A stretch of DNA of 64,000 bases from Penicillus capitatus (lineage: Eukaryota > Plantae > Chlorophyta): NCBI GenBank assembly GCA_965649825.1, contig OZ287697.1:1722351-1786350 (forward strand), read 5' to 3'. This document shows positions 30,076 to 56,142 of this stretch, one piece after another (positions within the stretch are counted from its first letter, which is position 1; each line of letters begins with the position of its first letter). The notes under the pieces are model-generated. The model was not told the origin of the DNA, made no database searches, and saw only the letters and a program-made list of their open reading frames with translations. Both the position numbers and the translations under genes were made by a program.

Positions 30076-33000
30076 ATGCAGACGTCCTCGGTCTGGCCGC
30101 TTCTCGTCATCTTCCTCGCCATGCATTCATTCGCGTTTGGCCAAGGTACGAGGAGCACGAAGCCGGCAGACGGCTCCCTTCTGAGACCGTCTGTTGCAGA
30201 TCTCTGCGACTCCTTCGTGGAGAACAACGCGCTGATCGTCACCGCCAGGATCGAACGAGAGATAAACGCACTGAAGACGTCTTTTCAGGCGCTCGTGGAC
30301 TGCCTTCATCCGGGAGGAACGATCCGATTCAAGACGCGGAGCTTTTCGCCGAGCAAAACCATTCGCATCGAAAAAAGCATCACCGTGTCGACCGTCGCCG
30401 AAGAGAAGATCGCCATTGCGTGCAACGGAAGGCCGGTTTTCGACATCAGGTCGAATCTGTTCCGGCGCCGACTGAGCTGACGCAGTGATGCGCGCACAGG
30501 AATGCCTCGGTCGAGATCTCTAACATCCTTATCGGCGAATGCAGCTTGAGCGACAGCGCCGTCGCTCCGCTGATCGTCGGACCGGATTCGGTGGTCACGC
30601 TGAGATCCGTTGCCTTCCTGCGCAATGCGAACGCCGACGGCGCCAGCTGCATTTTGGCTATGGCCGGATCCGGCATCGCCATAGAAGACTCGGAGTTTCG
30701 AGAAAACAGAGGTTTCCTGGGACCGGCGATTCTGGACGATGTCCGTCGTCTGACGGTCTCTGCGTCGACCTTCGCCGAGAACAGGGCTTACGGTTTTGGA
30801 GAGGGAGGCGGCGTCTTTCGCATCCACGTACGCACGGTGCATTCCTAACACGCACCGTCGACTCTCTGTCTGACTGCAGGGCGAGAATGTACCGACGGTC
30901 GTCGTCGTGAAGGACGAGAGTCGATTCGTCAAGAACGACGCCTTCCAAGGAGACGGCGGCGTCTTCTTCGCGTCCGGCGACAGCATCTCGCTCGCTGTCG
31001 AAAACAACACGCTCTTCAAGGGGAACGCCACCAAGCGTAGGGGCGGAGCCATCTTCATCTCGTCGGCGAGGAACTTGACCATCACGGATTCCTTCTTCGT
31101 GGAGAACCTGTCCAAGGGCACGGGAGGCGGAGCGATATTCGCCGAGGTGGATGGGCCGTCGGTATCCCGTTCGGCAGAGACGACTGACGCTCTCTTCTGC
31201 GCAGGATACGAGTGAGAGTGGTTTGGACGTCGCGATATCCAATTCGCTCTTTGCAAGGAACCGTGCCAGCGGGTACCTCGCCGCTGGCGGCGGAATCCGC
31301 CTCCAGGGACGCGACGTTCGCTGCTCTTTGCGCGAATCGGTCGCGTTCTCACACAACGTCGCAGACCTCGACGGCGGAGGCATGTACCTTCTGGATCAAG
31401 CCTCTTGCGACATCGAGAGCGCAACGTTCGTCGGAAACGAGGCCTTGAACGGAGGCGGTGCCGCCATCTACGTTCTGGTACGCTGACGTGGCGGCGCCTC
31501 CTTCCTCACCCTTTGCTCGCGCTGTCTCAGTCGCTGCAGCAAGCCCGTGGCCGTGTGTTGGAAGTCGTCGTCGCGCAGACGACCTTTCTCTTCAACAGCG
31601 GCCTGTACAGCGATCGCGGCGGCGGGTGCATCGGCGTGACGGGCCTCGGATCGAAGATGACGATCCGGGATTGCACGTTCCGAAGCAACGACGGGGGAAG
31701 AGGCAGAGGCGGCGCCATCTACGCGTTTCACGGACCGGTGATCGAGATCGTGCATTCGCACTTCGAGCGCAACAAGGCGGAAAGAGGCGGCGCCCTGTAC
31801 GGCGAGGTAGAGGACGCACGAACGTCGGTCACTCCTTCGTCTACAATCGTGTGTCTCAGAGTGACGCCTCATTCGACATCCGAGACTCGACGTTTGTGGA
31901 GAATTCGGCTTTCGAAGGAGGGGCCGTTTACGCATGGGGCGACGTTGACATCGATGTGGGGCGTTGTGCATTCGAAAGAAACAGGGCACTGAGGGAGGGC
32001 GGCGCACTGAAGCTGCGCAATTTCGGATCGGGCGGGTCAGAGCTGGCCCGCTTTCGAATGAACGGCAGCGCGCTGGTGGAAAACGGAGCTGGCTCCAATC
32101 TGTTCGAAGACCGTCTCCTCGGCAAGAAGACACAGGGAGGAGGCGTCCTTGCCGAAGGCAGTGGACTGGTGCTCGAGTTCGTGGACGGCGCGTTCAGACG
32201 CAACGTCGCGTCGAACGGAGGCGCACTGAGCATTCGCGCCGTCGGCGACTGCATCATCGACCAGGGCAACGAGTGAGAATCCATCGGGCGTCTTGCGGGC
32301 GCGACTGGGGTTTGTGCAGATTCGAGGACAACAAGGCCACCTTCGGCGGGGCGGTTTTTCTGGTCGTTGACGAACAGATCGATCTCGTCAGACGGCGAAA
32401 CTACTTGATTGCAAGAACCACCTTTCGGAACAACAACGCAGACTACGAGGGCGGAGCCCTGCATGTCTCGAGCACCAAGACGGAGTCCAATTTGGTGTCG
32501 CAGAACGCATTCGTATTCCTCTTGACGGTCGAGGAGAGCGCGTTCAGGGAGAACACGTGAGATTCGCCGCACTTGTCCGGCACGGATTCGCGATGACGTG
32601 CCTTTTCGCGCAGAGCACGGCGTGGCGGCGGTGCCGTATCGATCGTCGGGTCGGCTGCCAGGATCTACCGAAGCGCCTTCGAGTCGAACCGTGCCGCGAT
32701 CGATTCGACGGACGTAGAAGCGACAGTGCTCGGCTTTGGAGGTGCCATGAGTCTTCAAACCGGATCCTCCGTCGAATGCACCGACGTGCAGTTTCGATCG
32801 AACTCGGCAGACGTCGGAGGGGCCGTCTTCGTCCGAGATGGTTCTTTCGAAGGGACGGGCGTCGAATTCGTCGACAACGCCGTGCTCGACGGCGGCGTCG
32901 GCGGCGCTGCGGCGGTCGAAGTGTCCAAGGGGAAGAGGATACCCGTCCTCAACAGCGGCGACTACGTGCTCAACATCGCCTTCCAATGCGACGTATGCCA

Positions 33001-35901
33001 TTTCCTGAGAAACTCTGGATCGCTTGCAGGAGGTGCATCTCCTGGCGTCCGCCTCCGCGAGCTGACGACCGTATCTCCAGGTGCCGTCCATGTGCACGAC
33101 ATGGATCCCGGAGGAACGTTTGCCGAAGACAACGAGCTGAGGATCGATGGCTGCGTGGAGGGGACGAGGGGCACGTCCGGCGACCGAGACAACGCGCTGA
33201 CCTGTCCGTCCTACTTCCGGTTCGTGGAATCGGTCGACGCGCGTTCCGTTCGATTCAGGAACACCGCCTTCGCCGAAAACGAAGCCAGAGCCGGAGGAGC
33301 CATCTTCACCAACAACCTTTCGATGATCAGCATCATGCCAGACGTGCGAGCGGTGGTAGACAAGTCCGTCGCCCTCGGATTCGTTCTGCAGGAGAACGAG
33401 GCGCATCTGGAGAAGAGCAACGTCACCTTCCTCGACAACAGCGTCGTCGACGGGGGATACGGCGAACGCGTGGCGTCCACACCCGTCACGGCATTGCTCA
33501 CGGATCTGGACGACGACAGCGGCGGACGTCCGGGGATCGCTTTGACGAAGAGCGACTTTCTCAGCGGCGCTCGGCTTCGATTCGGTGTCGAGTTCGAGGA
33601 CGGCCTGGACGCGTCCGTTACCTTTGCCGATCGTCTGACGGCGCACATCAGCTGCGACGAAGATCGATTGGACGAGCAAGCGGCGGACTGTGCGCTTCTG
33701 GAGATTTCGGGACAGGAGGCGGCCGAAGTGAGCGAGAAGGGCATTGCGAACTTCACGGCTGTCCGGCTGAGAGGCCTAGAGAGCCAGACATACGCGCTGC
33801 GTGTGGAGTACCGTTCGGCATCTGAGCTTCAAACGCTGAACACCGAACCGTCGCGCGTTCGAGTGACGATGCGACCCTGTCGGATCGGAGAGAGAACCGT
33901 CAGCGGCGAAGGAGAACTGCTCGAGTGTCAGGAGTGCAGCAGCTCGACGTACAACCTCAGTCCCAGAGACGCCGAGTGCCAGCCGTGTCCCGAGAACGGC
34001 AACTGCGAGTCCAGAGTGATCGTTCCGCACAGCGGATACTGGCAGGACTCGCCCTGCTCCGTGTCGATCGCCAAGTGCCTGACGTCTCACGCGTGCAAGT
34101 TCGGAGAACGCGTTCGAAAGCTGCGGAGCATGACGGACGACCTCTCGAGCTGCGATATCTCAGAGGCGGAGATAGAGGCGTACCAGAGAGCCCAGTGTGC
34201 ACAGGTGCGTTATGCTTTCTGCGAATGGAGGCCTGTGAGGTGTCTGTTTTGCGATTCCAGGGTCACACGGGGCCGCTCTGCGGAGCGTGCGAGAGCGGAT
34301 TCGGCAGTTCGTTGTCGTCCAGGTGCAAAGAGTGTCCGTCCGACATCGGCAACGTGGCTGTCATCTGCTTGTCGGTTGTGACGCTGCTGGGCTTGACCGC
34401 CATCACGATCCGAGGGACGCTGGGCGTCGCGAGGGGCAGGAGCTCGGGAGGCTTCAACCAGAGCGCAAGTCGAGCGTCCGTTCAACCGTCCCAGTCTTTC
34501 TCGCCGAGCGCCGTGCAAACGGGGCGGGCACAGGCGGTCAACATCGCAGGACAGCGAGACAGCGCAGACACCGAGGAAGCTGGAGGGTTTCCTGCCACCG
34601 ATGCAACGCTAACGCAATGGAAGGTCGTCGAGATGTTCAAGGTATGGCGCTCTGCGTGTTCTTTCGTAAAGGGCCAGTCGTTGGCGCAGATGACGCTGAA
34701 CCACATTCAGATGACGGTCCTGATCGCGACTCTGGACGTCGGCTGGGTCGTCCCGTTCCTCGTCATGGCAGAGATCGCAGGTCCGCACCCCTCCCGCTCG
34801 TCTGCGCGACTAACTCGAAGTCGGATGCTGCCGTGTTCAGAGTTCCTGGGAAGCCTTGCGATCGAGAGCATCCGCCGTTCCGTGGTCTGCCTGAGCGGAG
34901 AGAGCCAGTCGTTGCATGCGACGGCGTGGGCGTCGATCGTGAGCGTCTGCATCGTTCCGGCTTCTGTCTTCCTCCTGCTCGCGCTGCTGTGGACCACAAA
35001 CGTCGTCTGCCGTTTCATCGAAAGGCCGGTCCATTATCTAGCCAAGAGAGCGCTCCTGTCCATCATGGTCCTCTGGTACATCACTTCCGTCGCCGTGATC
35101 AAGACGACACTCGGCACCGTCCTCTGCGTCAGCGCCCACAACGTCCTGGACGCGACAGACGGAGAGAAAGAGATGAGCTACTGGGCGGTGGACACCAGTC
35201 TAAAGTGCTTCGAAGGGGATCATCAGACGCTGGCCGTCCTCATCCTGTCGTTCGTCGGCATCGTCTACGGCGGGCTGCTGATCGCCTTCGTCGCCATCCT
35301 TGGGTCCGCGGAAGAGCGGCTGAACGACGCAGACCACTGGATCTACCAGACCATGGGATTCCTCTACCGCAGCTACCGGCACGGGTGGCGTCGCTACTGG
35401 GAGGTTGCGATTGTCGCAAGGAAGGCAGGAGTCGCCTTTCTCGTGTTCTGTGCGCATCGCTTCGACAGCGTGCTGCCTATCATCGGCTCTGCTGTCTTCC
35501 TGACGCTTGCCCTGGGTGTGCAGATGGTGGCGATGCCCTACAGGCAGAGATCCGATGTGCTGAACAAGATCGAATTATCCTCGCTGTTTGCCTCCCTTCT
35601 GACGTTGCTTCTCGCAACCATGTTGAAGAGTGGGGATTCCGCCGAGGGCCGGAGTGGTTGGACCCTCTCTGCTCTATGTGGTCTGCTGAACATCGGCACT
35701 TTGATCGTGTTTCTGTCGTTTCTTATGCACTATTTTGTGGATCACTTGAGGGTTGTGATGCGCGAACGGGGAACTCGGGTGAATGTTGAAGGTGTCGGAG
35801 ATCTTCGGGTCTTGAAAATCTGGGCGTGGCACGAAGCTCAGCGCCTTGCTTGCTTGTCAGGTCTGTTCGGTCCGGAGAGCACTACCCCTTCGCTGTCCTG
35901 A
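30076..35901 (+). CDS. Pmp-like beta-helix / Cys-rich / multi-TM protein (divergent paralog), many exons
   Basis: Signal peptide MQTSSVWPLLVIFLAMHSFAFGQ. GGA/FxxN repeats occur across ORFs 30546..33200, with CQPCPENGNC, GHTGPLCGAC and a TM domain in 33925..35901. Introns are about 50 nt, several at positions conserved with the other copies. Confidence 0.85.
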
Positions 35902-35920: not shown

Positions 35921-36200
35921 GTGTGGCAAAACGAATGTTGGTTGTTTCTGTGGAACGTTGTCGTCCATGTTACTTGTCTCCTGACGGACGACTCGGAAAT
36001 GGTGTGTAAGGAAAGAGGCAGGTTGTGTCTATCCTTCTTAAAGAGTGACTTGGCGATGAGCACAATAGCACAAATCTCACTCTTTGGAGGCAATGGGACG
36101 TGATGGTCATCAACCGACAACCACAAGAGAGAAGGCCGTCAAGCACTAACAATTCAGTGGACTCGATATTTGACAAATTGACAGAATCATCGATGGAGAC
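35921..36200. repeat. 3'-flank of the 30076..35901 gene, duplicated at 56411..~56700
   Basis: GTGTGGCAAAACG...GTAAGGAAAGAGGCAGGTTGTGTCTATC...GAGTGACTTGGCGATGAGCACAATAGCACAAATCTCACTCTTTG is shared by both sites. The end coordinate is approximate. Confidence 0.85.
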
Positions 36201-36413
36201 CAAGAGAAGGACTGGACGAATTCAAGATCCACGCTTCTTGCGGTGCTAGCTGTAGCCGTCTGAGATCCTTCGCCTGGGAAGGAACACGCTTCGGCGGAAT
36301 TTGAAGCAGCTCGTTCCGCAACGGCAACTCTTTCAATTAGTCATCTGCACGAGCGCGTTGAGCACATACCTCGACGATTGGACAGCGAGTAAAGAGAGAG
36401 GCACGTCAGCTTG

Positions 36414-37547
36414 TCAGGGAATCAATGGTTCTTTGATCGAACGTCGTTCAAGTAACAGCGATGTTAAACGTGTCCAATGCGAAACATAAACGGAATAGTC
36501 CCCGGACTGAAAGCATGGGTCGACGATCAGAAGGAGCGAGTGTAAATCTGTCAGACGAAAAGAGCTGTCGGCAATCCTAAGTCCGCGGCAGCTGACACCG
36601 ATTCTCAGAGTCGGATCGTGTAAACTGACAATCAGTCGATGCCTGCTGCCTGTGAACAGAAGAAAAGACGCTGTTGACTGTACCAACGGAAATGCCAGAT
36701 GGAGCACTTCGAGTTGACCAAAGTACTGAAAACTTGTCCACGGTGCGAGAAATAGATCAGGTCAGAACAGATCTAGATTCGAGGGACAGACTGCGCCAGC
36801 GTACTAAATAGCGTCCTAAAGAGGCAGAAGAGCGATTAGGGATTAGGAAACTGGTTATGAATGACGGACATCACTGACAGGTAACTGATGCGCATTGCGG
36901 ACCATAGTCGTTTACTATCAGCTTGGTCGGCGACGTCGAGGGAAACAGGATCTGATTGCTCCCGTTTCTCAGCAAGAAGCCAGGAAGACTGACTTCGCAG
37001 AGGCCTGCGAGCGCGATCTAGGACGACGACTCGACGGCCGATGTTCAGTGTGACGTCGTCTCTTCAGTCCTGTCAGGGACAACAGCACTCTGCGGAAGCC
37101 CTCGTACGATTCAGCAGTCCCCAGATGCACACCGAGAGAATGCAGCCGAGAGTACGTTTCTGAATGAAAGAGCTGAAGATCGCCGTCTGTCCCGTCGCCG
37201 AAGTAGTCCAGTCGCTCCAGCCGCGTCATTGAGGTCAGACCGGCGAGCCGCCGAGCAACGTCGTGATCTTCTGACGGGAAACAGGCCGAACAAGGGAGCT
37301 CGACGGCGTTTGGAAAAGCGGTCAGCACGTCAGAGACGTGTTCAGGAGGCACCTGTCGAAGCTTGACGGGCAGAGACTTGCAAGCCGCGTCCCATTGTCG
37401 ACACACGCGGCGGTGCTCTTGAAGACCGTCGTGAAGAAGATAGCCGAGTACCTCGTGAAGGAACAAATCCTCGTCGAGCAGAAGGCTAATACAGTTCAGG
37501 TGACTGGACTGCGGTCGCCTTTCGCCGGAAACATCACGTTTTGCCAT
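36414..37547 (-). pseudogene. F-box-like/LRR pseudogene (unit 2 copy of 17357..18992)
   Basis: ORF 36969..37661 matches the 18126..19268 protein up to LTGLKR and then shifts frame through indels. ORF 36414..36707 is a degenerate match to 17357..18148. Confidence 0.8.
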
Positions 37548-38274
37548 GAGGTGCACCGTCGGCTTTGTAGATTGACTGCGACGTGGTTGTCGTTGCTTCA
37601 AGTGTCGGCGGGCTGTTCGACGGCGCCTCTTGCGTACGACAGCTCTGTCGGCGTGTGACACGAGGCGTGGACGTCGCGTGCGCCATGTAATGCGGTCGCG
37701 TTACCGCGATTTGCGATGCGAGTACTAACAGCGCTTGATGTGACTTGAGTTCTCTTAGAAATGCACATCGTGGGCAGTTTGTGTCACACAGAAGGATGGA
37801 CGTTGGGTGAATCAGTTCGTCCACGACAGGCTTTGACCCTTATTACTCAAGGCCCGCTCGGGAGGACAGGTTCGCGACTGGATACGGCGCTTCGCTGTGC
37901 ATTAGCATGGAGACGCTGCCGTCATCGCATTCCTCCCACTATCGGTGCTCCGAAGATGGCGATACTGTTGCCAGAACTGAGACCGATAGTACGTTCTTCC
38001 GGTAAAATCGTCTCCAGACAGACTGCAAAAACAGATGACGAGAACAGGTTAGGCGTGTGAAATCGGACAAGGGAAATGCCAGCGAACTCCAATCCTCCAA
38101 CATCGTCACAGATGCGACCTCAGACTTGGTTGTTCTGAGACAGCAACGGAGGAACTTGTGGATTCACGTTGCACGCACCCGCATGCTGGTTCATAACTGC
38201 TCCAGAAACGCGTTCCTGACCCACTCTGTTTCTCCATCAGAGGCTCAGCTCCATCCACCAAATTCGCTTCCAAG

Positions 38275-41200
38275 ACAGAAGCGTTGTCGCCGCACGGAAG
38301 ACAAGGCAGTCCGCCGGGGACGAAACCTCGTGCCGGCGACGGTCGACGACGCGCCCAGTGCGCACTCACTCGCCGTCGACGCACGACAGGTCTGTGCTCG
38401 AGACTGGGTCGCCTGTTTGCCTCGCCTGTGTAGTCCATTTGCCCGAGTCTCGACTTGTCGACAAAACGAGACGGTGGATATCATCACAGCACGTTGGATA
38501 TTATGTGGACAGAGCGGCAGCATGCTGGAACGTGCTTCCACGGAAGGCCGTCATGTGTGGTCGCTGTCGCGCCAGCGCTGATGACCCCAGTTGCGTCAAG
38601 GGGCACCTACACTATAAAGCCCCTGACTTCGATTTGATCAAGCACACAGCACGAGTCAAAACCTTCTACACTGCGAACAACATGCGAGCGAAGGCTGAAT
38701 CAGTTTGTTCGGCCCTGTTGATCATGAGTACTACCTTCGGCCTCGTCGTCGGATGTGCGTTGACGGCCTCGACGTTGACGCACGCAAGGCATGCACCGAC
38801 ATCATCGCTTTCCGGTGACAGCATGGTTTACTGCTTCGTCACTCACCTGGCTGTTGGTTCTTAACTTCGCAGAACTGGACGACGAGCCTGTTGTGCCCGT
38901 TCCTAGTGCCAAGTCTGTATCGTTCAAACCAACCCTACAGCCTCAAGTACGTCTACCTTCTCTGCACAAGCAACGCGGAGAGGGTCCTATCTCGGCGCCC
39001 AGGGAAGAAGCGACGCGCGGACCCTTCGCCAAGTGAGCCAAGATGGCAAGGCGACAGCAGGTTCGTTCCATTCGCTGTCACGTCGCGCCTCGTAGCTGAC
39101 TGTGCTGTCGCGTTTTCGCTAGAGGTCGCCTGTCGTCTGTCGAAGGCGAGGCGTCGCCGTTATCTGAATGCCAAGACGAGAGAGTGGTTGCTCAACTCGG
39201 CAGTCCTCGACGAGATACAAGACGACCTCCAGCTCATCGTCAACTGTTCTCGACCGGGAGACGTGCTGCTGCTCGACACCACGAAGACAATCCGGCCTCC
39301 TTTACGCACCGTCATCTCATGGCCGCTGACGATCAGCGGCTACGTCCCGGGAGGAGAGCACGACAGGGTCAACACTGCTGCCTCGGAGAAGCGAACCATC
39401 CTCGTCTGTCCGCAGATGAACGAAGGACTGTTCACATTTCGGTAAGCTCAGACTCTATCCGTCCTAATGATGTTAGATGTGTTCGCTCGCAGGACCACTG
39501 ATGTCACTCTGACGGACCTTGTCGTAGAAGGGTGCCTATTCGTCGTTTCTGGCACATCGGAGTCCGTCATCGGCTTCGAAAAGTGTGACCCTAAAGCCAC
39601 CAGGGGACTCACTGGGGGAACCATTCGGCTAGATCGCATCGGATTCAGAGAGAATCGTTTTCTTGGCAGATCAGTTGCCATCCAAGCGAACGCGTCATCC
39701 TGCTCAAAACTGGAGATCGAAGATTTCTACTTCCAGAAGAACACCTGCAATGGAGTCTGCGGTCTTCTTCTCGCCAAAGCGAACAGGCTCCAGAACATCA
39801 CCATCAGACAGAATCGACGAATATCATCGCTCAATGGAGTCAACGATCTGCTTCTGACCGAAGAGAACAGACTTCAGAAACTTTCCATGGAACATTTCCG
39901 ATCGATACCATCCTTATCTTCCAGATCGGTGATCATTTGGGCACCTCCTCGGTCCTCGACATCTGCCGAAAACATCAGTGCTTCGGAGAATAGTTGTGCC
40001 ACAATCGAGGTCGACGGAGGCTCCTTCGGTCTGTCAAACAGCATCTTCAGGAAAAACGCGGCAACCGATGAGGAGGGAGACGACTCCATCAGTGCCTGTA
40101 TCAAGATGAAAGACGCATCTGCTGTCATCCGTGACTGCAGTTTCGAGGAGAACGAAGCAAGTTACGGTGTGGCGATCAATGCTCGAAGATCGAACATCAC
40201 TCTCGAAGATTGTGCATTCCGTGGCAATGTTGCTGGGATGGACGGGACCATCTATCTCCGGAATAGAAGTTCCTTGACGATCGACTCCTGTCGGTTTTCG
40301 CGGAACAGAGCCGAGAAGTCTGGTGGTGCAATCTATGCACAGAATGCCGAACTGAGCGTCACACACTTGACCTGTGTGCAGAACAACGCTACACTGAAGG
40401 GAGGGTGTCTGCACGTGGCCGGGTTCGGCTCAGTGAAGATGACCGACTCTGTCCTGAAAGGAAACAGAGCTCGCTCAGGCGGCGCTCTACATCTCAGAAA
40501 TACATCAGCAGCAATCGACAGCTCGAAGTTTTTATCGAACCGAGCTGAAAAACTGGGAGGAGGAATCCGTTCGATCGGCTCAAACATCACTGCAAATGGA
40601 ATCATAGCTGACGGTAACCACGCTGAATATAGAGGTGGCAGTGTTTCGATCGCTTCAAGATCCAATCTCACCGTGCACGACTCAGTCTTCAAGAACGGCG
40701 CCAGTTCTAGGGGAGGAGCAGTCGAACAGAGTGAGAACTCTGTGGGAAGGTTCGGCAATGTGACCTTCGTGGACAATTTGGTTGATGAGGAAGGAGGCGC
40801 CATCTTTGCGGATAACGCGACAGTGATTATTCATAACGCAAGATTCAGAAATGTTAGATCTGGTACTCAATCGTATCTCTCAGGCCGAGGCGGCTTTCTA
40901 TTCGCGAGGCATCACAGCTCAGTTTTCGTCGAACATGCAACGATGACAAAAGTAACTGCGGGAAATGGCGGGGCGATCTTCTTAGAAGATTCCGTCTGCA
41001 CGGCAAAGCAGCTAAACGTGTCAAAGTGCACTGCAGTATTTGCTGGTGGAGCAGTAGTCGTTGGAAGTTCTGAATTCCTCTGCACAAACTGTCTTTTTGC
41101 TTCGAATACGGTCTCGACTATTGGCGGAGGTGCCATTTATATCACTAAAAACAGACGCCGCAGATCTATTGTCCAATTACAGGAGAGCAAAATAATAAAC

Positions 41201-43266
41201 AATAGTGGGAGATGGGGAGGTGAATCTACTAAATCATGCATTGATGGAGCATCTTTATTGGTTTGTTTCGTAGGGGGTCTTCATGTTTATGACAGCCGAA
41301 AGTGCTTAAAAGACGTATACAAATGCATTGCTGTAGTTATCATTGACACTCAGTTCGAGGGAAACAGTGCCTATGAGGCTGGAGGAGCGATCTTTGCAGA
41401 CCGCTTGGAAAACATCAGATTTCAGTGCAACTCGTCATCCAAGAATGGCAATCTGAAATTCTTGGAAGAAAAAGAATGGAGTTCTTTGAACCGTATTACA
41501 CCCGACACGACTCTCTGTCCTGCGTGGAAAAACAATTCTGCTGGCATCTACGGGGAGGTTGTTGGTACAATGGCCACCATGGCGAAGATGACTGTCGAGT
41601 ACAAGGGAGAGAAAACAGAAGTCTTGACTGGAGAAGGATTCGAAGTTCGAGACTATGTCGGTGGCAACCAGCTGCCAACGCTGTCAGTGGAAATGCTGGA
41701 TGAACTGAAACAGGGTCCGGCGAACGCCAACACGATCGGTCCGGATGGTATGGCTACATTGACAGCATCAGAAGGGTTTCAAGTTGGCAGTTCTTCTCTG
41801 TCTGTGGAAGGACAGACTGCCAACTTTCCTCTTCTGATCGGTTTTGGATTGCCGGGCATCTACAACATGACAATTAGATTCGCGAGGCACGAATGTGCTG
41901 GAGATCATAACAACAGCGCATTTGTCGATCCATTAACCATCACCGTCCATGTGCGAAACTGCACTGTTGGTGAAATGCCCGTCGGTGAGACGAAGATCTG
42001 CAGCAACTGCAGCACCTCTACGTACAACTTCGACCCTGAAGCAGAAGAATGTCAGCCCTGCCCTGAGAACGGGAACTGCAAGACAAGAGTGATCGTTCCG
42101 AATGATGGATACTGGCACGCGTCTCCCTGTTCCGTCAACATTACGAGGTGCCTGACCTCGTATGCATGCAAATTCGACGATCGCGATGAGAGATTGACAA
42201 ACCTGACAAGAGACATGAAGAACTGCAGAATCAACGCTACCACAGTTGAGGAGTATCAGCAAACTCAGTGTGCTGAGGCGAGTGATTGGTCAGCCTTTTG
42301 ATCTTCTGAGTCTTTGTGTTCTGGGATTCAGGGCCACACGGGTCCTCTCTGTGGAGCATGCAACACCTCGTATGGATCCTCCGTGTCTTCCAGATGCGAA
42401 GAATGCCCCACGGCATTCGGCAATGTCATGACGATTTGCTCTGCGACAGTGATCCTACTTATTCTGTCCGGTGTTACGATCAGAGGGACACTGAGTACCG
42501 CTAGCAGCAGACTGGCGATGCTTTCCGGCCATCGAAGAGTTCCCCGCAGTATTCAGCTCAGAGATCTTTCGCTTCCAGCCGAGCCAGAAACGTCTGAGAT
42601 ACAGGCGTCCCAGGAGGAGTCGCCTGCGATCCAAGACACGAACGAATGTCAAGAAAGCCTGACTGTCACCGAAGTGACCCTGGGACAGTGGAGAGCGGTC
42701 GAGATGTTTAAAGTATGAAGCTATGTGGCATTCGTGAGACTGACAGTCTTCGTTGCAGATAATGTTGAACTACGTTCAGATGACAGTGCTGATCGCATCA
42801 CTGGATGTCGGATGGGCAGTTCCTATACTTGTCATGGCAGAGATATCAGGTCCGCATCTGCGAAAGCTGACAGAATGTTTCCACCCTTCATCGTTGTGTG
42901 CTGCACAGAGTTCTTTGGAGGATTCGCGGTGGACAGTACCCGACGTTCTGTTGTTTGTTTGGGCGGACACGACCAGTCACTGCATCCAACCGCATGGGCC
43001 TTTGTCGTGAGTGTCTGTCTTGTTCCTGCATGTGTGGCGTTGGTGTTCATCGTGTTCTGGATCACAGTTGCACCATTTCATCAGATCCGTCGTCCGGTCC
43101 GCTACGTCATGCAGAGATCTCTGCTGTCTCTGATGGCTCTTTGGCATATTACTTCTGTTCCGGTGATCAAGACGACTCTGAGCACAGTCCTTTGCGTCGA
43201 CGCCTACAATGTTCTGCATGCGACGCCGGAGAAGGATGATGAGACGACCATAGATGGGACGAAAGG
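38275..43266. repeat. Recent segmental duplication, copy at 59006..64000
   Basis: Offsets are 20731 and 20734 bp. ORF translations are identical outside 40832..41765, and looser similarity extends left to about 37460/58194. Confidence 0.92.
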
Positions 43267-44005
43267 AGAGATGGTCAGCTACTGGGCAGTTGACACAAGT
43301 CTGAAGTGCTTCGAAGAGGATCACCGGAGGCTGGTGGTTCTGATCATCTCGTTCGTCTCCCTCGTCTACGGTGGACTCCTGATCGCCTTCGTCGCCATCC
43401 TTGGATTCTCAGAAGACCGGCTGAACGACACGGACAGCTGGATCTACCAGTCTGTGGGATTCCTCTACCGCAGCTACGGACACGGGAGGCGTCGCTACTG
43501 GGAGCTTGCAATTGTGGCAAGGAAAGCAGGGATTGCTTTCCTGGTGTTCTGCAGCCATCGCTTCGACAGCGTGCTGCCCATCTTCGGAGCTGCCGTCTTC
43601 CTGACGCTTGCCGTGAGTGTACAGATTGTGGCGATGCCCTACAGGCAGAGTTTCGACGACCTGAACAAGATCGACACATTCTCTCTTTTCGTGTCGCTTC
43701 TGACGACACTTCTTGCAGCCATGATGAAGAGTGAGAGTCCTACCATTGATGCTGGTCGCTCAGCTATCTCATTTCTGTTTGTTTTCCTCAACATCACGGC
43801 TCTCGCCGTTCTGCTCTCGTTTCTTTTTCGTTACTCCGTTGCCTACGTTAGACTCTCCCTGAGAGAAAGCGGAACGAGAGTGGATTCTGATGCCACTGCG
43901 CTGCATGTGCTGGGGATCTGGTTGTCTTGTATGACTCGGAATCTGGCTGTTCTTCTTGGGTTTTCCAAGCACGATGACAAGTCGAGCATCTGTTCCGGCA
44001 TGTGA
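38682..44005 (+). CDS. Pmp-like beta-helix / Cys-rich / multi-TM protein (unit 2 copy), multi-exon
   Basis: Start MRAKAESVCSALLIMSTTFGLVVGC. Introns 38815-38872, 38948-39003 and 39061-39123 restore the frame into the N-cap. Main exonic ORFs are 39467..42301, 42314..42718 and 42725..44005. Confidence 0.87.
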
Positions 44006-45827
44006 TCTTTCTTTTTTGTCCGTTCCACATACATCATTCTTTTGTTTTCAAGCTGAGTGGAAAGCGGAGCCTTTCTAACTCATGACGAACTTTACACCCC
44101 TGCAGCCCTTCGTACCTTCATATCTAATCCTAGTGTGTGAGGGCTGTAGCGAAGATATGGCCGAGTGTCACTCTTCGAGATATGACGATTGTTGTTTAAT
44201 TGACTTGACGAAAAGATGACGCACGTACGCCGATCGCGTCGGCATCGAATGAACAGAGCTCTGAGGTTACACAGGCGAAGAGTGTGCATGGTGCGACCAA
44301 GAATTTGTCCAACACACGGTGCTGACAATCCGAAGTATTCGACGAAACGACTTCCATGGCCGAGACCACAGACAGACGATTGATTCTTCAGATGACGCTT
44401 GCATTGAAGCCGACGGCCGCTCAAGGACCCTCGAACAGAACGGACACGTCAGCTGCAATCGCGATTCTATGTTCTCCACCACAGCCAACCGCGCAATGAA
44501 AAACTCATCTTTCTCCGCTCGTGGCGGCGGGAAATGCTGTTTAGAGAGCGATCGGCGAGAAAACCTCAAATGGAGAAGACGTCTGGGCTGGTTTCGTTCT
44601 CACGCACATTCTAAAAGCAGGCGATAACAATCCAGCGCGGCGAAAGAACGTGCCATCGGTTTTTCATGGGGGATGAAGGCGATACGAGAGTCGATGCATG
44701 ATCGTTCGCACAAACCTTCAGAACCTGTCGATGTCGCCGTCTTCTGCGCGTTATCACGTGAAGGTCGAAGCGCTGGGTACCGAATGTCCTTAACGCCTAC
44801 AGGAGACGAGCCCTTGGGAAGACTTTCGACCAAGGCGTGCCCTATAGCAGCGAAGGTCAACTATTCTGGACGTGAGGAAATCGACACCGTGTGGAGCATG
44901 GGAATGCAAGAAACATGAAAAACCAGCTAACAACACCAAATCGAGTAACTTACCGCATTCGGCGACCAAACTCAAGCTGCCGAAGTGAAACGCAAACCCA
45001 AACAGTCGTGTGTTTTCAAGACGCTCCAAAGAAGGTTGTCGCTTTTCAAGAAGCAAAGATCACTCTTTCTTCCAGATTTGAGAATAGGTCGTTGACGGGG
45101 GACACGCAGAGGTGACGGGTGTCGATGTGACAAAAGGGCTCGCTGAGTTTTTGGAACGAGTGCTGCAACGAATGGTGCGGAGACGGTTGATCCAGAGCCT
45201 CTAGTGCCTGGAGCCTAGAGGACTAAAGGCTAAAGTAGTGTCAAGCCGAGGATCCAGTGATTTGATTGATGTGTCCAAGAAGACAATGAAATGACCTGTT
45301 GATACAAAAGATCCTAGACTATGTGGATAATGCCCTTTTAACAAAACACTGCAACCTCGTTTTTAAGACAATTCATCGCGATGGGATCACAGTAGACTGG
45401 GCAAAACTTGTGTCGGAGCCACTCGAGTCCTCCGATTACCAGAAGATGGTAGAGAAGTGCTGCTTAAGGTTTTAGAATACTTCCTTTTTCCCTCCCAAAG
45501 GCGACCATAGAAACGCCGCCCACCAACTGTGGATCAGACCTATTCTCATGTCCTGAGTGCGTGTCAGATGTCGATCTTGATCTGTAACAGCGCAAAAAAC
45601 GACAGCGGGGCCAACCAAGAAGGTCGTTAGCAAAAGCGACGACGCGGTAGTCATCCGTCGGTCTGTGCGGTTAGTTCTTCGCCGTCGAGGAACGTTTAAC
45701 CGCTTGTTGGATTGTGAGTTTGGTTATCGGCTGTTCTGCGCTCAATTGTTGACTTTTCTGTGCACTGACTTGCTATGAACTTTGGTTGCAGTACTAGCGA
45801 GGCCCTTTGCGGGGGTCCTCGATCTAT

Positions 45828-46017
45828 TCGTTGCGAGCCCTTTCGTTCAAAATTTGGTAAACCTTAGCGAATACGAAGGCATCTCATTGCTCATCTGCTC
45901 GCTGACATTCGTGTCTGGCCTTTTCTTCAACGACGAGCGTACCTCGGATACTGTACGAGTCCTTTTGACAATTCTTCGGGTTTTTTTGCCAATCTGGGAA
46001 CGATCGTGTCTTTCATG
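45828..46017 (+). pseudogene. Relic of the TM domain of a paralog of the 2506..9064 gene
   Basis: It encodes EYEGISLLICSLTFVSGLFFNDERTSDTVRVLLTI, versus EYEGLSLLICSLTFVSGLFFNDDRTSDAVRVLLTI in ORF 2506..3699. The flanks are frameshifted. Confidence 0.85.
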
Positions 46018-46519: not shown

Positions 46520-47365
46520 TAAGACAACGCTTATCGTTCTGTCTTCCTGACTTTGTCCACATTTCACAACAGTATTCCTCAGAGCTGTCGCATAATACGT
46601 AAAGACGACCCTGAACGTCGAAAACATTGATTGTGGTTCACAGAGTGGATCTTTCATGTGATCCGTGTGTATCTTTTTTTTGCTATTCGAGAACCTGAAC
46701 CGAGTTCTCAATTACACTGGGAGACGACCGGTGAGGACGATCCCAGCCAACACTCCTAGTGCTTAAGTGCATGTATTGTATCTTAAAACGTCACGGTCGA
46801 AACAGAAATCGCAGTCGGACTGTTAAACATCGCCGTTTGGTGTTCCATTGTTTTCCCGGCAAATGCGATTTCTTTTTTAGTCTATGTATATGTGTCTGCT
46901 TGTGTTTGAGTCATTCTCAATTGTCTCTTTAGATCTGTCAACGCGTCTTCTTTTCTAAGGCGTGTTAGCCGTTACATCCTGTCGATAATGTGTGACGTGT
47001 AATGGAAGGCGGAAAAGCTCACGTGATGCGAAAGAAATCTTTGCGACCTTGACGTGTGGATTGATTAGACTCTACGGCATTCTCTCAAAGAGATGTCTGC
47101 GAGGTTAGGGAGATTGAACATCTCTTCGGCGAATGCGGTCGTCTCGTGTAGACAATGATGAGTGACTGTCCTGTGAAAGAGGTTCGGGTCGATGCGCGCA
47201 TTCAGACACAGCTTCAAAGAAAAGAGTGGTGCCGTATTTGATTAATAGACAGTTGGTAGATGGATTTGACAAAGCCTGGTTGCAGAAACCCTTCGACGAA
47301 TCATGCTTCATTGTTTGGACAGCAACCGGCAAACAACACCCAACAACGCCGTCCACTTCAGACGG

Positions 47366-47598: not shown

Positions 47599-47777
47599 TG
47601 TCAGACTAAATGAGCACAATGAAGGCATCCCGACGGCATAAGAGAAGTCGCATCAGAACCTACTACATGTCACATCAAAACCCTAGCACTATAAAAGGGG
47701 GACAATTGCGTTGTTTACGTCATTCTGTTTTAAAAGTCTTCCGCTAATGCGTGTGTTTGTTCACCTACGACGCGACA
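47599..47777 (+). repeat. 5' LTR of the Gypsy element
   Basis: TGTCAGAC...GCGACA, with TATAAAA at 47690. I counted 7 substitutions versus the 3' LTR (about 96% identity). Confidence 0.95.
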
Positions 47778-47789
47778 TGGTTTCGGAGC
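47778..47789 (+). promoter_or_regulatory. Primer-binding site TGGTTTCGGAGC (initiator-Met-tRNA-like)
   Basis: It abuts the 5' LTR and differs at two positions from the plant tRNA-iMet PBS TGGTATCAGAGC. Confidence 0.85.
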
Positions 47790-47800
47790 ATCGATCCAAG

Positions 47801-48154
47801 ATGCGACGTTGTTTCTATGTTCTGGCAGCCCTACTTCTATTCGGGCTCGGTGGAGTTGGAGGTCAGGCGGAGGCTAAATCCACCCTGGACCGGAAGTTGA
47901 AGATGGACGACGAGATCAACTTTCAAGATCTCCTGGAGGCGATTAAAAACAATCAAGACGCAACGGAGAACTTACAAGAGGTTGTTGACAATATTGTGGA
48001 GATCGTATCCGTTCTGGCGGCAGACGCTGCGGCCGCTAAGGCGGCAAAGGAGGAAGCCCAGGGTTTCGATGTCGAGCTGGAATTCACATCGGAAACGTGG
48101 CATTGCGTCAAGGAATGTCTCCGTCTTTTTTTCGAGGATGCTATGAGCTCATAG
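47801..48154 (+). CDS. Retroelement ORF1: signal-peptide-like N-terminus plus acidic coiled-coil-like segment
   Basis: MRRCFYVLAALLLFGLGGVGGQA-EAKS. It overlaps ORF2, which lies in the -1 frame, across T TTT TTC (48127..48133). Confidence 0.7.
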   Translation: MRRCFYVLAALLLFGLGGVGGQAEAKSTLDRKLKMDDEINFQDLLEAIKNNQDATENLQEVVDNIVEIVSVLAADAAAAKAAKEEAQGFDVELEFTSETWHCVKECLRLFFEDAMSS

Positions 48155-49488
48155 TCGGCATCGTGGGTCGATTGGGCATAGCGTGGAATCAAGGAGACTT
48201 TGTTACAAAGTCTCCGTTGACCTTCATGATATACAACACGGTATGCACCATACCGGGTGCCGTTCGAAATGCTGTGTGGTTCGTGGTCCAAGTATGGACT
48301 GCGTACAACGCCCTACGTAGCTGGTTGAGGGGAAGCCCTAAACTTGAGAAGGGCGAAAAGATGAACGACTCGATTGAAAGTTACGAGGAACTGACGCAAG
48401 TCCGTCGGTATCGAGAAGAAAGACTCCAAGACTTCGTCGACAGACTTGTCACGAAGTGGAAGACCCTCACACCCAAGATCTCAGACGCAAGATTCCTGAG
48501 AGTGTTGAAACAACATTTTCCCCGAGAATTCCTGCAAGGCCTGCACGATCTCAATCTTGACGAAGTGAAGGTGAATACAGTGATCGAAAAGTGGAACAAT
48601 TTCTGCAAGTGGACAGCCCCTCCGGCGAACAGAGCAGCTCCCCGGGCAACGCAGCCCACGGCAGCGAGAGTGCAACCAGTCAGAAGGGATGCGAGACAAA
48701 ACCCGCAGCAGGGACAGCAGCAGGGACAGCAGCAGGGACGACAAGACGAGAGGAGGTGCTACAGATGCAATCAGCCAGGGCACTTGTTTGCCCAGTGCCC
48801 TTTGAATGCCCCGGGTCGCTATAACCGAAGGGCAGTTCAGGAAGTTAATGTACCAGAAGGCTACGAGTTGACACCTGCCCCATACAACGCCCAGTGGGAG
48901 CAAGAGGGACGATGCGATCGAGAGCCACCGTCGCCGTGTGCACAGTGCGGCGAGCGCCATTGGACTAGCCATTGTCCGAGTCGTCAGCCAAGTTCGAGCT
49001 CCCATGCAGAAGCAGAGGCACCGAGACAGGTCTTTCACGACGAAGGGTCGGACACCGAAGAGAGCACTCGTCGCACCGAGAGCGTGAGCGTTTTCTCGAT
49101 TGCAAAGACAGGGACTCCCTTTATTGCGAAGAAGATCCACATCACGTTCCAGTTCACGAACAGGGACAAGAAGGTTCAGCCGGTGAAGGCGTTGGTTGAC
49201 ACCGGTAGCTGCGCAAATGTCGTCTCATTCTCGGCGCTTCAGAAGTTGGGATACGCTAAGACCGACCTCATACATGACGCAAAAGTACCTTCAGCATTAG
49301 CCGGGTTCGCAGGCGAGGACGCCAGAACACTTGGAGGCATCTTCCTCAAGGTGCGCCTGGGAAGCGTCACCCGCGATATACCGTTCATCGTGATGAACGA
49401 CGTCCTGACGCACTGCATCATTGGTATGCCGGCGATTGACGCATTTGACCTCCACATCCGTGGACGGGCACGTGCAGTGTCTTTTTAG
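48097..49488 (+). CDS. gag: Retroelement ORF2: hydrophobic segment, Gag (two zinc knuckles) and aspartic protease
   Basis: Motifs are YEELTQVRRYREERLQDFVDRL (gag-like), CYRCNQPGHLFAQC, CAQCGERHWTSHC and ALVDTGS...IIGMPAI (protease). Confidence 0.9.
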   Translation: MALRQGMSPSFFRGCYELIVGIVGRLGIAWNQGDFVTKSPLTFMIYNTVCTIPGAVRNAVWFVVQVWTAYNALRSWLRGSPKLEKGEKMNDSIESYEELTQVRRYREERLQDFVDRLVTKWKTLTPKISDARFLRVLKQHFPREFLQGLHDLNLDEVKVNTVIEKWNNFCKWTAPPANRAAPRATQPTAARVQPVRRDARQNPQQGQQQGQQQGRQDERRCYRCNQPGHLFAQCPLNAPGRYNRRAVQEVNVPEGYELTPAPYNAQWEQEGRCDREPPSPCAQCGERHWTSHCPSRQPSSSSHAEAEAPRQVFHDEGSDTEESTRRTESVSVFSIAKTGTPFIAKKIHITFQFTNRDKKVQPVKALVDTGSCANVVSFSALQKLGYAKTDLIHDAKVPSALAGFAGEDARTLGGIFLKVRLGSVTRDIPFIVMNDVLTHCIIGMPAIDAFDLHIRGRARAVSF

Positions 49489-52330
49489 AACATCCTGCCG
49501 AGGAGGGCGACTCTGCAGGATTCCGCGTGGTACAGTTGTGGGAGACGGAGAAGGGAATCCGCCCTTTTTGTAGACAGAATCTCATCAAGTTCCCGTTAGG
49601 CAAGACCAAGTTTGTCCCACCGCGTGAGTGGGTCAGTTACAATTTTCCTTGGGCCGTTCGTGGGGATCTGTCGTCTGTGTCTTTTCATTGCTCTCTGAAC
49701 AGATGTCCTTTTCTTGCGTTTGTGACCGTCTCTGACTCGGGACAGTTTCGTCTGAACATCTACAACACATCGAACGAGGCTCAAGTTCTGCTAGGGAGCA
49801 CCTTTGCATGCAACTTTTGGTATTCCGGTCGGATGCGGTGCAAGTTTTTACCCCTCTGGAATAAAGGGGATGGCGAGGATCGAGCAGTCAAGGCCGTGTT
49901 TTCAGTCAGTGGTGATATGTTTTCCGAGTTCCCCGAAGTTTTTGATGATGGGACCTACTGCGTGACGCCTGCGATGAAGGCTTTGCGCGTTGACATCCGA
50001 GAGTGCCGTCTGAAAGGTGATCCGACGTTCATGGGCGAGCGTACCTGTCCGAAGATCGACCACCTAGTCCCCGAGCAGCGCATTCGAGAGGAGATAGATT
50101 CCTTTTTGCGAAAAGGCTTCATCGAGCGTGTGAAGTCGAGTGACGAGGGTTTCCTCACGCCTATCTTCTTCTTGCCGAAGAAGGATGGAAAGAAGATAAG
50201 GACACTCAATAACTACCGCAAGCTTAACGCGATGTGTGACTTTTCGTCGGCGACATTCGTCGACGCCATGAGGACGATGCGGTCCATACCGAGGATCTGG
50301 AAACACTTCAGCAAGCTGGATCTGGCGAACGCTTTTTTCAGTGTGGGGTTGAGCCGCGAAACGTCGAAACTCTTCGGGTTCAACATCTTCAACGAGACGT
50401 ACGTGTGGAGGGTGATCCCCCAAGGTTTCGGGTGGAGCCCTATTTGGTTCGTCGAACGAGTGAAGGACATTCTGCACAAGCTCCCCGTCGTTGTATACGC
50501 TGACGACGTGCTCGTTGGAGCCGATTCGGAGGCTGAGCACAACCGAATTCTACGGTTGGTGCTGCAGAGGTTCGAGAGGTTCGGTCTGCGTTTGAACAAG
50601 GACAAAGTTATCATCAATGTTCCCGAAGTTGACTTTCTCGGCTTCCGCGTCAAAGGAGGCGGTTTCAACCTGAAGTGTTACATGGAAGAGAAAGCGACCA
50701 AGACACCGAAGCTTGAACACTACAAGCAACTAGAGAAGACGATCGGTGCCCTCAACTTTTGCCGGGCGCATGTCCCGAATCTGAGCAAGAAGATGGATAT
50801 GCTTCACTCGGCCAAACAGAGAGCCCTGAGGTGTCCAGCCGACTGCGATGAAGCATGGTGGAAGGCGATCAACGAAAAGGTCAGAGAGATATGGGTAGAC
50901 GTAGTGCGAAGCGGCGTCGAACTCAGTCTCGGCGGGTCATTCGACTCGTTTGAGCTCTATGTCGACTGGAGCGGCCCGCATCGCGGATACGTCCTATTCG
51001 GCAAGTGCGATGCCGCGAGGGAAAAGCGCATCGTTGCCGTGGGATCTGCGAAGGACCCGATCCCCCACCAGAGTTCCTTTCTAGGCGAGATTCGGGCAGT
51101 GAAGTGGGCTCTTCAACAGACGACACAGTTTCGAGGAGCCATCAAGACGAAGACATACGTCGACAACAAGGTGGTGGTCGATGGCCTGAACAAGGGGATT
51201 GCGGCGTTCTGCGATGACCGAAGGTGTGCTCGAGTGTTTGCCTTTATATGTGAGAACGAAGGAAACGTGATGTTCTCCTATTTACCTGGAAACCTGAACC
51301 AGATAGCCGACCAGCTTTCCCGATTAGACTCGGGTGGACTTACGCAACAGCCCTTAGACAAGGCGATCATGGCGATTGACCGCCCCGCGGAACAGGAGAT
51401 CGAACGCAGGATACGTTCCGCCCATTTCGGACACTGGGGATACCTGACGACGCTCCAGAACCTGCTCCTCGAGTCGGAGAGGTGGCCAAACATGGAGCGG
51501 GACGTACGCAACTTCGTGTCGAGCTGTCCGAACTGCGCCTTCAACGGCGAAGAGCAAAGGAGGGATGTCCCGAGCACCGAAATATCTCGCAGAATCGGCG
51601 AGAGAGTGTCCATGGATCACTGTGGGCCATTTTTCGACGGATCGCATATCCTCGTAATCGTGGACGACGCGACAAAATGGGTAGAGGCTCTGAGAACCCC
51701 AGGAACTGGAGCCGTGCACGCCATGAGAGCGTTGGATCAATGGCAAGCAAAGCACGGAAGGATCGAGCTGCTTTGCACGGATAATGCAAGCGCTTGGAAC
51801 TCAGACACCTTCCGAAGATGGGCAGCAAGCCGACGCATCGACACTAGGAGAAGTCCGAGTTATCACCACCAGGCCAACGGATTGGCAGAGCGCACCATCA
51901 AGACGCTGTGCGAGCGAATCAGGCGCTTCATGAATGGGTCGACGAGGGCGTGGCCCAAAGCGATACAAGGAGCCGTAGACGCCATCAACACATCGTGGAG
52001 TTCAGTGACTAAGACCACGCCGCAGTCTCTCATGCTAGGCATTGATCGCAACGGCGCATTGCTGGATGACGAAACAAGCCGAAAAGCTTGGGAAGATGCG
52101 TGGAGAAGCGCTCAGCTCGCCAAGACGTACAAGCACGAGCGATTCAAGTGGAAACACCCGCGGCTGTCGAAGCCACTGCGTGTAGGCAATCGGGTGCTGA
52201 TGAAGAATTACCACCGGTCGAATCACCCGCTCGGAAAGCTGGGCCCGAAGTGGATCGGTCCCTTTATGATCGAAGAGCAGAGATCGGAATCGACCTGGAT
52301 CGTGCGAGAGGGACGAGGCTTACCGCCTGT
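49449..52330 (+). CDS. pol: Retroelement pol (RT, RNase H, integrase), interrupted at 52330; last 13 codons at 55998..56037
   Basis: RT motifs NNYRKLN, KLDLANAF, PQGFGWSP and YADD; RNase H-like LYVDWSG...GEIRAV; integrase HFGHWG...CPNC, MDHCG, TDNASAW, NGLAERTI; GPY/F motif KWIGPF. The frame is open from 49449, -1 relative to ORF2. Confidence 0.95.
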
Positions 52331-54057: not shown

Positions 54058-54176
54058 CCTGTTGTTAAACGTTGCTTCAGAAGACGCAGTAAAGTTCTTA
54101 AAGAAAGTTCGTGCGCAGAAGTTACAAATCTAATCGAATCTCTTTTTACTTATACGCATGATGTGATGTTACCACC

Positions 54177-55921: not shown

Positions 55922-55997
55922 CCACCGTGCTGAGCACGGGACGATGTTCAGTAATAATCTTCATTACTTGCCTTCATCATCCCATCTCGACACCTGT

Positions 55998-56037
55998 TCT
56001 GGTTCATTCCTCCCAAATAAAGCCCTATCTAACATAA
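55998..56037 (+). CDS. pol: Displaced 3' end of the host integrase
   Basis: Removing 52331..55997 joins CCT GT to T CTG GTT CAT... in frame and restores ...REGRGLPPVLVHSSQIKPYLT-stop. Confidence 0.88.
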
Positions 56038-56142
56038 AATCACCTGGCTGGAACGCTTTTATACTTTCCCTCAAGTCGTGCACATCGTCTCCATGTGGCC
56101 TCCTATCTCTTCGGAGTTTGCGCTCGGAAGGTGATGAGCCCA

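Follow-up and report, generated by a model that had tools for sequence, protein, structure and literature searches.

A mosaic divergent island within otherwise identical tandem genes of a green-algal PMP-repeat protein family

Two tandem genes located in a stretch of 64,000 nucleotides of Penicillus capitatus DNA (assembly GCA_965649825.1, contig OZ287697.1, positions 1,722,351 to 1,786,350; the whole stretch is called the window hereafter) are identical over several kilobases, except for a central block of about 0.93 kb. These twins, named units 2 and 3, encode a predicted membrane protein carrying Chlam_PMP repeats. The divergent island within the otherwise identical twins is real and statistically solid, and it is itself a mosaic, not a uniformly hypervariable region. 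Its interpretation as a patchwork that would result from non-allelic gene conversion is well supported by the sequence comparisons reported here.

Extent of the divergent block

The window corresponds to the reverse of positions 28,534-92,533 of the ENA metagenome contig ERZ25074695:ctg340394_13x_l, from which the sequence located 3′ of the window end (position 64000; locus L002) was also read. Units 2 and 3 were compared column by column in MAFFT and BLAST alignments. An earlier note on this DNA, made from the sequence alone, had described identical flanks around a divergent block, and this description was borne out, with no difference in 2,557 bp on the 5′ side and an identity that continues on the 3′ side to the window end and on to 45024. 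The 3′ flank stands as described except for a single isolated G/A at 41815/62549, a synonymous change that the note had overlooked. Apart from the block and this one base, the homogenised core (38275-45024; 6.75 kb) is 100% identical. Identity falls to 95.4% (37533-38274) and 97.2% (44951-45900) in the zones just outside the core, and the collinear patches found farther out (35921-36214, 36918-37461 and 46637-47365) are 87-93% identical and broken by indels.

Within the block, 176 of 934 alignment columns differ (81.2% identity), which represents 163 substitutions plus three indels (3, 3, and 9 nt) that keep the reading frame, and the proteins share 203 of 297 residues (68%). The earlier note had counted 88 identical residues out of 130 in the 5′ part, i.e., about one third of residues differing; 89 of 129 were measured in the 5′ exon part, and the peptides that it quoted (HNARFRNVRSGTQSYLSGR vs NHSRFRDGAATSPYGWNY, GYECTAAAIIDTQF, and QGPATID..NERI) were all found.

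Mosaic structure of the block

Three divergent stretches alternate with two short shared tracts in the block (Table 1). When the columns of the block were shuffled 20,000 times, the longest identical run had a mean of 27 and never exceeded 68, compared to 76 in the observed alignment. A Sawyer-type permutation restricted to family-polymorphic sites gave P = 5e-5 for 41209-41284 (41 sites) and P = 2e-4 for 41037-41100 (34 sites), and the identical flanks, which span 379 and 860 polymorphic sites, were also significant (P < 0.001).

The synonymous (dS) and nonsynonymous (dN) divergence of the twin pair and their ratio (omega) were estimated by the Nei-Gojobori method in five sub-blocks, A to E (Table 1). 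Between neighbouring sub-blocks, dS varies about 17-fold (0.058 to 1.0) beside flanks where it is 0, which indicates pieces with different histories and not the accumulation of mutations after one duplication. Moreover, the block boundaries fall within exons and within a domain, so that conversion tracts fit better than exon shuffling.

Kinship with other paralogues

The paralogues available for comparison were unit 1 of the window, P0004 and P0006 from the same contig, P0003 and P0005 from a second contig of the same sample (ctg340204_12x), P0007 from a related alga, and P0330, the twin of P0003. The loci of P0003, P0005, and P0330 are labeled L005, L006, and L010, respectively. At 84 of the 163 differing sites both twin states are present in other paralogues, and of the other sites, 39 carry a state private to unit 2 and 35 one private to unit 3. 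Depending on the position in the block, the closest paralogue is L006, unit 3, L005, or unit 1. In 40832-40899, 20 of the 24 informative sites place unit 2 with L006, from which unit 3 is far, and the dS of sub-block A is 0.08 between unit 2 and L006 vs 1.0 between unit 3 and L006. Unit 3 agrees with L005 in 41285-41449 and 41720-41769 (30:5 and 21:5 sites), with an identity of 85-91% that is above its identity to unit 2, and the dS of sub-block C is 0.20 between unit 3 and L005 vs 1.6 between unit 2 and L005. In addition, no difference separates unit 3 from unit 1 at 21 polymorphic sites in a row in 41723-41749 (P < 5e-5, Sawyer-type permutation), in agreement with the local resemblance to unit 1 (QGPATID..NERI) reported in the earlier note. 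The patchwork gene conversion proposed in that note is thus backed by the uneven dS, the sites shared with paralogues, the switching of neighbours, and the significant fragments (Sawyer-type permutation).

Exchange among paralogues is a general property of the family. Elsewhere in the gene, significant fragments are shared in many pairs, e.g., by units 2/3 with L003, L004, and L006 in 42352-42641, and by unit 1 with units 2/3 in 43259-43357. When positions 7900-14350 of L003 were compared with the homologous positions of L006 (contigs ctg340394_13x and ctg340204_12x), the single-copy flanks were 98-100% identical and the family gene (P0004 vs P0005) only 79-93%; by contrast, P0330 and P0003 are 99-100% identical within the gene.

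A search for donors of the block in unit 1, L003-L007, and L010 disclosed no copy above 94% identity in any 150-nt window, which suggests that the imports are old, that their sources lie outside the sampled paralogues, or that the divergent stretches are unconverted remnants. No block-only partial donor cassette was seen in the window or in the fetched loci, where block-like sequence is confined to full-length paralogues.

The intron inside the block

As stated in the earlier note, the intron at 41220-41273 is identical base for base to its counterpart at 61945-61998. The note had singled out the intron, but the identity is not peculiar to it, since the identical run around it (76 nt, 41209-41284) includes 11 nt of exon on each side and since a second shared tract exists at 40989-41101. 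Furthermore, about 6 of the 54 intron positions, as read off the family alignment, distinguish unit 2 from L005, the next closest paralogue. The identity between twins thus reflects a recent common ancestry of the tract, and a constraint holding the intron identical is ruled out both by these differences and by the extension of the run into both exons.

This segment has the features of a genuine spliceosomal intron. All eight aligned paralogues (8/8) are in frame once it is removed, and splicing yields ...RWGGGLH... with the expected GG motif, at the point where the spliced homologue P0021 has ...CGGGLEF.... Programs calling open reading frames (ORFs) read through it because it is open in frame in units 2 and 3 and in several relatives. 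The copy in unit 1 has one base less and contains a stop, and the called ORFs of several relatives stop within the intron.

Gene model and protein architecture

Both twins are intact, full-length genes. Besides the coding exons listed in Table 1, unit 2 has a further upstream exon ending at 39441, before the intron 39442-39492, and its reading frame closes at 44005. The five introns (39442-39492, 41220-41273, 42278-42331, 42713-42758, and 42850-42908) all measure 46-59 nt, those between the listed exons being 54, 54 (GC-AG), 46, and 59 nt long. Intron 42278-42331 has a GC 5′ end in units 1-3 and GTGAGT in P0004-type paralogues; it is open in unit 1 and holds an in-frame stop in both twins.

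The encoded protein is predicted to consist of a beta-helix made of Chlam_PMP repeats, an immunoglobulin (Ig)-like domain, a Cys-rich stalk, and a multi-pass membrane domain. The Chlam_PMP repeats (PF02415) were detected by Pfam scan with E = 3.4e-15 and 55 bits vs a cut-off of 20.6. In the AlphaFold2 model of the 944-residue ORF of unit 2 (39467-42301; mean predicted local distance difference test score, pLDDT, 79.5), regular short strands form a beta-helix at residues ~155-653, followed by a beta-sandwich at ~703-806 and by a less confident Cys-rich part. The ectodomain is accordingly modeled as a right-handed parallel beta-helix with stacked rungs, and the homologue P0021 matches the Pfam Beta_helix family at 5.7e-35. 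Foldseek searches with the ectodomain model retrieved generic beta-helix lyases, tailspikes, and adhesins, as well as Ig-like domains, none of them at E <= 0.001.

The block corresponds to residues 456-767 of the 944-residue ORF and spans, in the AlphaFold2 model, the last ~six rungs of the beta-helix, the linker, and the first half of the Ig-like sandwich. It is separated from the first transmembrane helix by ~170 residues of Cys-rich stalk, so that its placement on "membrane-proximal coils" in the earlier note is wrong.

Rung number varies too in this zone, as indicated by an extra 26-codon beta-helix rung present in P0004, P0005, and P0006 exactly at 40988/40989, where divergent stretch I meets shared tract a. 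This extra rung is a near-perfect tandem copy in P0005, and P0008-P0010 have still more rungs.

At the C-terminus, the Cys-rich part is followed by a first hydrophobic helix and by about eight more. Pfam scans gave no match for the multi-pass part and only a sub-threshold DUF7630 for the Cys-rich segment that precedes it. An AlphaFold model of the membrane domain (pLDDT 67) had no fold match in the PDB (best E = 0.48). The C-terminal multi-pass module (42725-44005) is represented by at least 85 sequence clusters in ENA assemblies, with 40-77% identity and none of them named, and a profile search with the same module returned 89 proteins, again none named. Searches of the literature for PMP-repeat families in green algae yielded nothing relevant.

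Proposed history of the twin genes

An old tandem duplication, followed by long-tract homogenisation through gene conversion or unequal exchange, with a short-patch conversion mosaic in the block, is the likely history of this locus. Units 2 and 3 are tandem paralogues belonging to a large green-algal gene family. Their duplication is not recent, because its edges are 3-13% diverged and because the long terminal repeats (LTRs) of the retrotransposon located between the units are 4% diverged. Given an old duplication, the perfect 6.75-kb core must be the product of a later and recent homogenisation, through long-tract non-allelic gene conversion or unequal exchange. The central 0.93 kb may have been left unconverted, or may have been overwritten later in both copies by short paralogue patches of tens to a few hundred bp. 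The outcome would be three divergent stretches of different ancestry, with two short identical tracts between them, one of which holds the intron by chance. Sub-block B (dS 0.06) roughly equals the outer zones in divergence and may represent sequence that escaped conversion. The greater age of sub-blocks A, C, D, and E relative to the duplication edges means that they must include imported sequence. We infer the order of events and the reason why this zone stayed different, unlike the mosaic itself, its significance, the dS ages, and the intron.

Several points weigh against this history. Homogenisation followed by overwriting and two flanking tracts that never covered the block are both compatible with the data. 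No near-identical donor was identified, the best sub-block match (85-94%) being to P0003 (L005) and its twin P0330 (L010). The DNA of 8-9 family members was compared, from what may be dozens. Finally, the contig comes from a 13x metagenome assembly and was examined as assembled sequence.

Selection and other explanations

Diversifying selection on the block was proposed in the earlier note. A possible, although rather unlikely, alternative to the history given above is that diversifying or balancing selection on a ligand-binding surface keeps the block different, with homogenising conversions purged from it and the flanks and intron left free to become alike, as in MHC or plant resistance-gene clusters. 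The family as a whole is indeed most variable where the block lies, the mean pairwise nucleotide difference reaching 0.25-0.29 at 40814-41308 vs 0.18 outside (Mann-Whitney P = 0.001), and the family omega rises to 0.5-1.05 in the 5′ half vs 0.3-0.45 further on. The differences between twins, both of which are intact, are grouped in two long loops left unstructured by the model and in the turns from N to GG along successive rungs; variable residues show no overall enrichment in the DSSP loops of the AlphaFold model (48/141 vs 44/152, P = 0.38). Sub-blocks B and E have an omega of about 2 each (2.0 and 2.15), but with P = 0.15 in both cases and after having been picked post hoc, and sub-block D is under significant purifying selection (omega 0.35, P = 0.002). 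Over the whole block, dN is 0.194 and dS 0.277 (Nei-Gojobori), and the proportion of differing sites is higher at synonymous (pS 0.23) than at nonsynonymous positions (pN 0.17). The resulting omega of 0.70 rules out region-wide positive selection, and all other pairs have an omega of 0.32-0.74 in the block region. The private changes (nonsynonymous:synonymous 32:7 and 26:9) are indistinguishable from the neutral expectation of 0.77. The data thus do not establish diversifying selection. The earlier note had itself named a dN/dS well below 1 with synonymous sites equally diverged as a finding that would speak against it, and the block, with dS above dN, comes near to this. A neutral alternative explains the island equally well: since conversion needs near-identity, homogenising tracts end at the most diverged part of the gene, and divergence itself would be sufficient to stop them. 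The data do not require selection. The one observation that points to the block as a ligand-specificity region is its overlap with the most variable part of the family, which would suggest such a role.

An assembly artefact is very unlikely. Repeat collapse, or switching between strains or haplotypes in a 13x metagenome, could have created the perfect flanks or the assignment of the blocks, and the second contig of the sample (12x) is indeed 93-99% identical over long stretches, which indicates that close haplotypes, strains, or large duplications coexist in the sample. However, each unit has distinct outer flanks, an 8.7-kb retrotransposon lies between them, and the homogenised core of 6.75 kb is shorter than a typical HiFi read. 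Both versions of the block also keep an open frame, correct splice sites, and their own mosaic kinship with paralogues, and an exact look-up of the 426-residue ORF common to the twins led only to these two places. Still less credible is a very recent duplication followed by local point hypermutation confined to the block. Sharp boundaries and flanks devoid of differences would be expected in this case and are observed, but synonymous sites are heavily and unevenly diverged, half of the differing sites are shared with paralogues, the intron inside the block is untouched, and the outer parts of the duplication and the LTR pair are 3-13% and 4% diverged, respectively. Hypermutation after a recent duplication was therefore rejected on the dS, the paralogue-shared sites, and the diverged LTRs.

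Comparison with known systems

What the twins offer is a new and neat case of a known process, gene conversion within a tandem family, here in a green-algal protein family that is uncharacterised; no new mechanism is implied. On one gene pair, conversion would have acted at two scales, with a 6.75-kb homogenising tract around a 0.93-kb island stitched from short pieces.

Tandem receptor-like resistance genes of the tomato Cf-4/Cf-9 Hcr9 family reportedly underwent a patchwork exchange for which positive selection is said to be documented. As in Hcr9 clusters, tandem paralogues encode membrane-anchored ectodomains built of repeats, exchange is concentrated in part of the repeats, and the membrane side is conserved or homogenised. 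Contrary to Hcr9, the scaffold is a PMP beta-helix and not formed of leucine-rich repeats (LRR), the membrane domain is multi-pass, there is no recognised ligand or phenotype, and no significant positive selection was detected. In class I genes of the major histocompatibility complex (MHC), introns are said to be homogenised while the peptide-binding exons are diverse. The algal twins similarly exhibit an identical intron amid diverged exon sequence, with recombination accounting for the identity, but the identical tract enters both exons by 11 nt and is one of two, and paralogues instead of alleles are compared.

With chlamydial Pmp proteins, which are type V autotransporters, the family shares Chlam_PMP repeats (GGA[ILV], FxxN), a predicted right-handed beta-helix, its multigene nature, and variation between copies. 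It differs by being eukaryotic, with five introns of 46-59 nt, and by a C-terminus composed of a Cys-rich stalk and of ~nine hydrophobic helices. No autotransporter beta-barrel was found in Pfam scans of the downstream ORFs and of the spliced C-terminus, which is alpha-helical and multi-pass. Antigenic variation by segmental conversion, as in Anaplasma msp2, Borrelia vlsE, and mosaic VSGs, relies on one expression site fed by silent partial cassettes. The central variable region set in conserved flanks and apparently rebuilt from pieces of the family recalls these systems, whereas both twins are complete, intact genes with their own upstream regions and no array of block-only cassettes was seen.

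A similar architecture has been described in the cysteine repeat modular proteins (CRMPs) of apicomplexans and ciliates, which present a large Cys-rich extracellular part and five to nine C-terminal membrane helices and are proposed to be contact sensors (PMC9670195). The likeness is limited to architecture, as no sequence or fold match was obtained for the twin protein, and the Pfam hits bearing on it, Ephrin_rec_like and DUF7630, were sub-threshold.

This case points to a large, unnamed surface-protein gene family in a green alga, which, like its membrane module, has neither a name nor a solved relative. If the variable zone sets the binding specificity, the family would be a candidate algal recognition system. 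Pushed further, the family combining PMP beta-helix, Ig-like, Cys-rich, and multi-pass parts could form a green-algal repertoire of recognition receptors for microbes, viruses, mates, or self, with a binding face diversified by segment shuffling among tandem and dispersed paralogues, and the twin island would then be a selected difference in specificity; we regard this as a doubtful proposal. Were it true, such a repertoire would be to algae what the clusters of receptor-like resistance genes are to plants, with a scaffold known until now mainly from bacterial adhesins.

Locus and neighbouring features

The whole duplicated segment extends over 37457-45911 vs 58194-66642, and self-comparison within the window (37457-43266 vs 58194-64000) gives 96.4% identity overall between units 2 and 3. 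An exact match to the 944-residue ORF was found only on the source contig ERZ25074695:ctg340394_13x_l. Other genes on this contig include RETICULATA-like, RelA/SpoT, and DCD genes, and for an ABC1-kinase exon located ~60 kb off, the best named matches come from the green algae Trebouxia, Chlamydomonas, Volvox, and Coccomyxa (45-57% identity).

Table 1. Features of the twin genes and of their surroundings, in window coordinates; dS and omega refer to the comparison of units 2 and 3.
Feature	Positions	Strand	dS	omega	Remarks
Unit 1	20930-25146	+			Older paralogue, ~78-79% identical to units 2 and 3; conversion-sized fragment in common with unit 3 inside the block
Unit 2	37457-45911	+			Duplicated segment with one full-length family gene; BLAST of L001 vs L002: 8.47 kb, 97.2% identity to unit 3
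Unit 3	58194-64000	+			Twin of unit 2, cut by the window end, runs to ~66642 in window-equivalent coordinates; ORF 60198-63035 = P0002
Unit 2 coding exons	39493-41219, 41274-42277, 42332-42712, 42759-42849, 42909-44005	+			Spliced model of 1,432 codons, single terminal stop
Identical tract 1	38275-40831	+			2,557 bp, 0 differences from 59006-61562
Unit 2 block	40832-41765	+			Starts exactly at the first difference (40832/61563) and ends at the last clustered difference (41765/62499)
Unit 3 version of the block	61563-62499	+			Counterpart of the unit 2 block
Identical tract 2	41766-45024	+			One G/A at 41815, then 3,209 bp without difference; rest of gene and ~1 kb of 3′ flank
Divergent stretch I	40832-40988	+			Hypervariable loop 1 (FxxN-to-GG turn of one rung); unit 2 version P0005/L006-like (20/24 informative sites)
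Shared tract a	40989-41101	+			113 bp, with position 41036 as the single mismatch; its two halves have permutation P values of 2e-4 and 0.02
Divergent stretch II	41102-41208	+			Rung turn TVSTI/TAES and YITKNRRRR/SIDTYRPRR; forms sub-block B with 40916-40988
Shared tract b	41209-41284	+			76 bp, 0 differences, holds the intron; 41 family-polymorphic sites, P = 5e-5
Spliceosomal intron (predicted)	41220-41273	+			54 nt, phase 1, GTGAAT...TCGTAG; unit 3 copy at 61945-61998
Divergent stretch III	41285-41765	+			Loop 3, last PMP rung, linker, first half of Ig-like domain with loop 4; unit 3 version P0003/L005- and unit 1-like
Sub-block A	40829-40915		0.80	0.48	
Sub-block B	40916-41219		0.058	2.0	25N:4S, P = 0.15
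Sub-block C	41274-41344		1.0	0.36	
Sub-block D	41345-41668		0.35	0.35	108 codons, P = 0.002 for omega below 1
Sub-block E	41669-41767		0.23	2.15	27N:5S, P = 0.15
LTR retrotransposon between units 2 and 3	47599-56321	+			LTRs of 179 bp (47599-47777, 56143-56321), 96% identical; gag/pol ORFs at 48097-52361

The retrotransposon at 47599-56321 has LTRs that end in TG...CA and differ by 7 mismatches over 179 bp, its ORFs carry zf-CCHC, aspartyl protease, RVT_1, and rve domains, and a sequence resembling a primer-binding site (TGGTTTCGG) is found 3′ of the 5′ LTR. No target-site duplication matching this element was seen. A second direct repeat (52332-52569 and 53822-54059; 238 bp, 99.6%) surrounds a zf-CCHC ORF on the minus strand, which may point to a nested element.

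A minus-strand ORF located upstream of each unit (18126-19268, 36969-37661, and 57007-57762) is 87-91% identical between units and belongs to the repeat unit. It has no Pfam match, and neighbouring ORFs at the related locus L007 match LRR_14. A G+C-rich partial or divergent copy at 32726-35901 is similar to units 1 and 2, but only in the part of these units that encodes the Cys-rich and membrane regions, and a PMP-repeat gene at 5042-8146 (minus strand) is a more distant relative. The gene P0330, similar to P0003, is located on the opposite strand ~6.6-9.2 kb to the left of the window, and the array thus extends beyond the window in divergent orientation. An RCC1/DCD gene pair occupies 9867-12384, and the same pair recurs upstream of other family members (L004 and L007). 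Finally, positions 1-3429 of the window match a part of contig ctg340204 at 99% identity in the inverted orientation (L005 1-3432; L010 was also compared).

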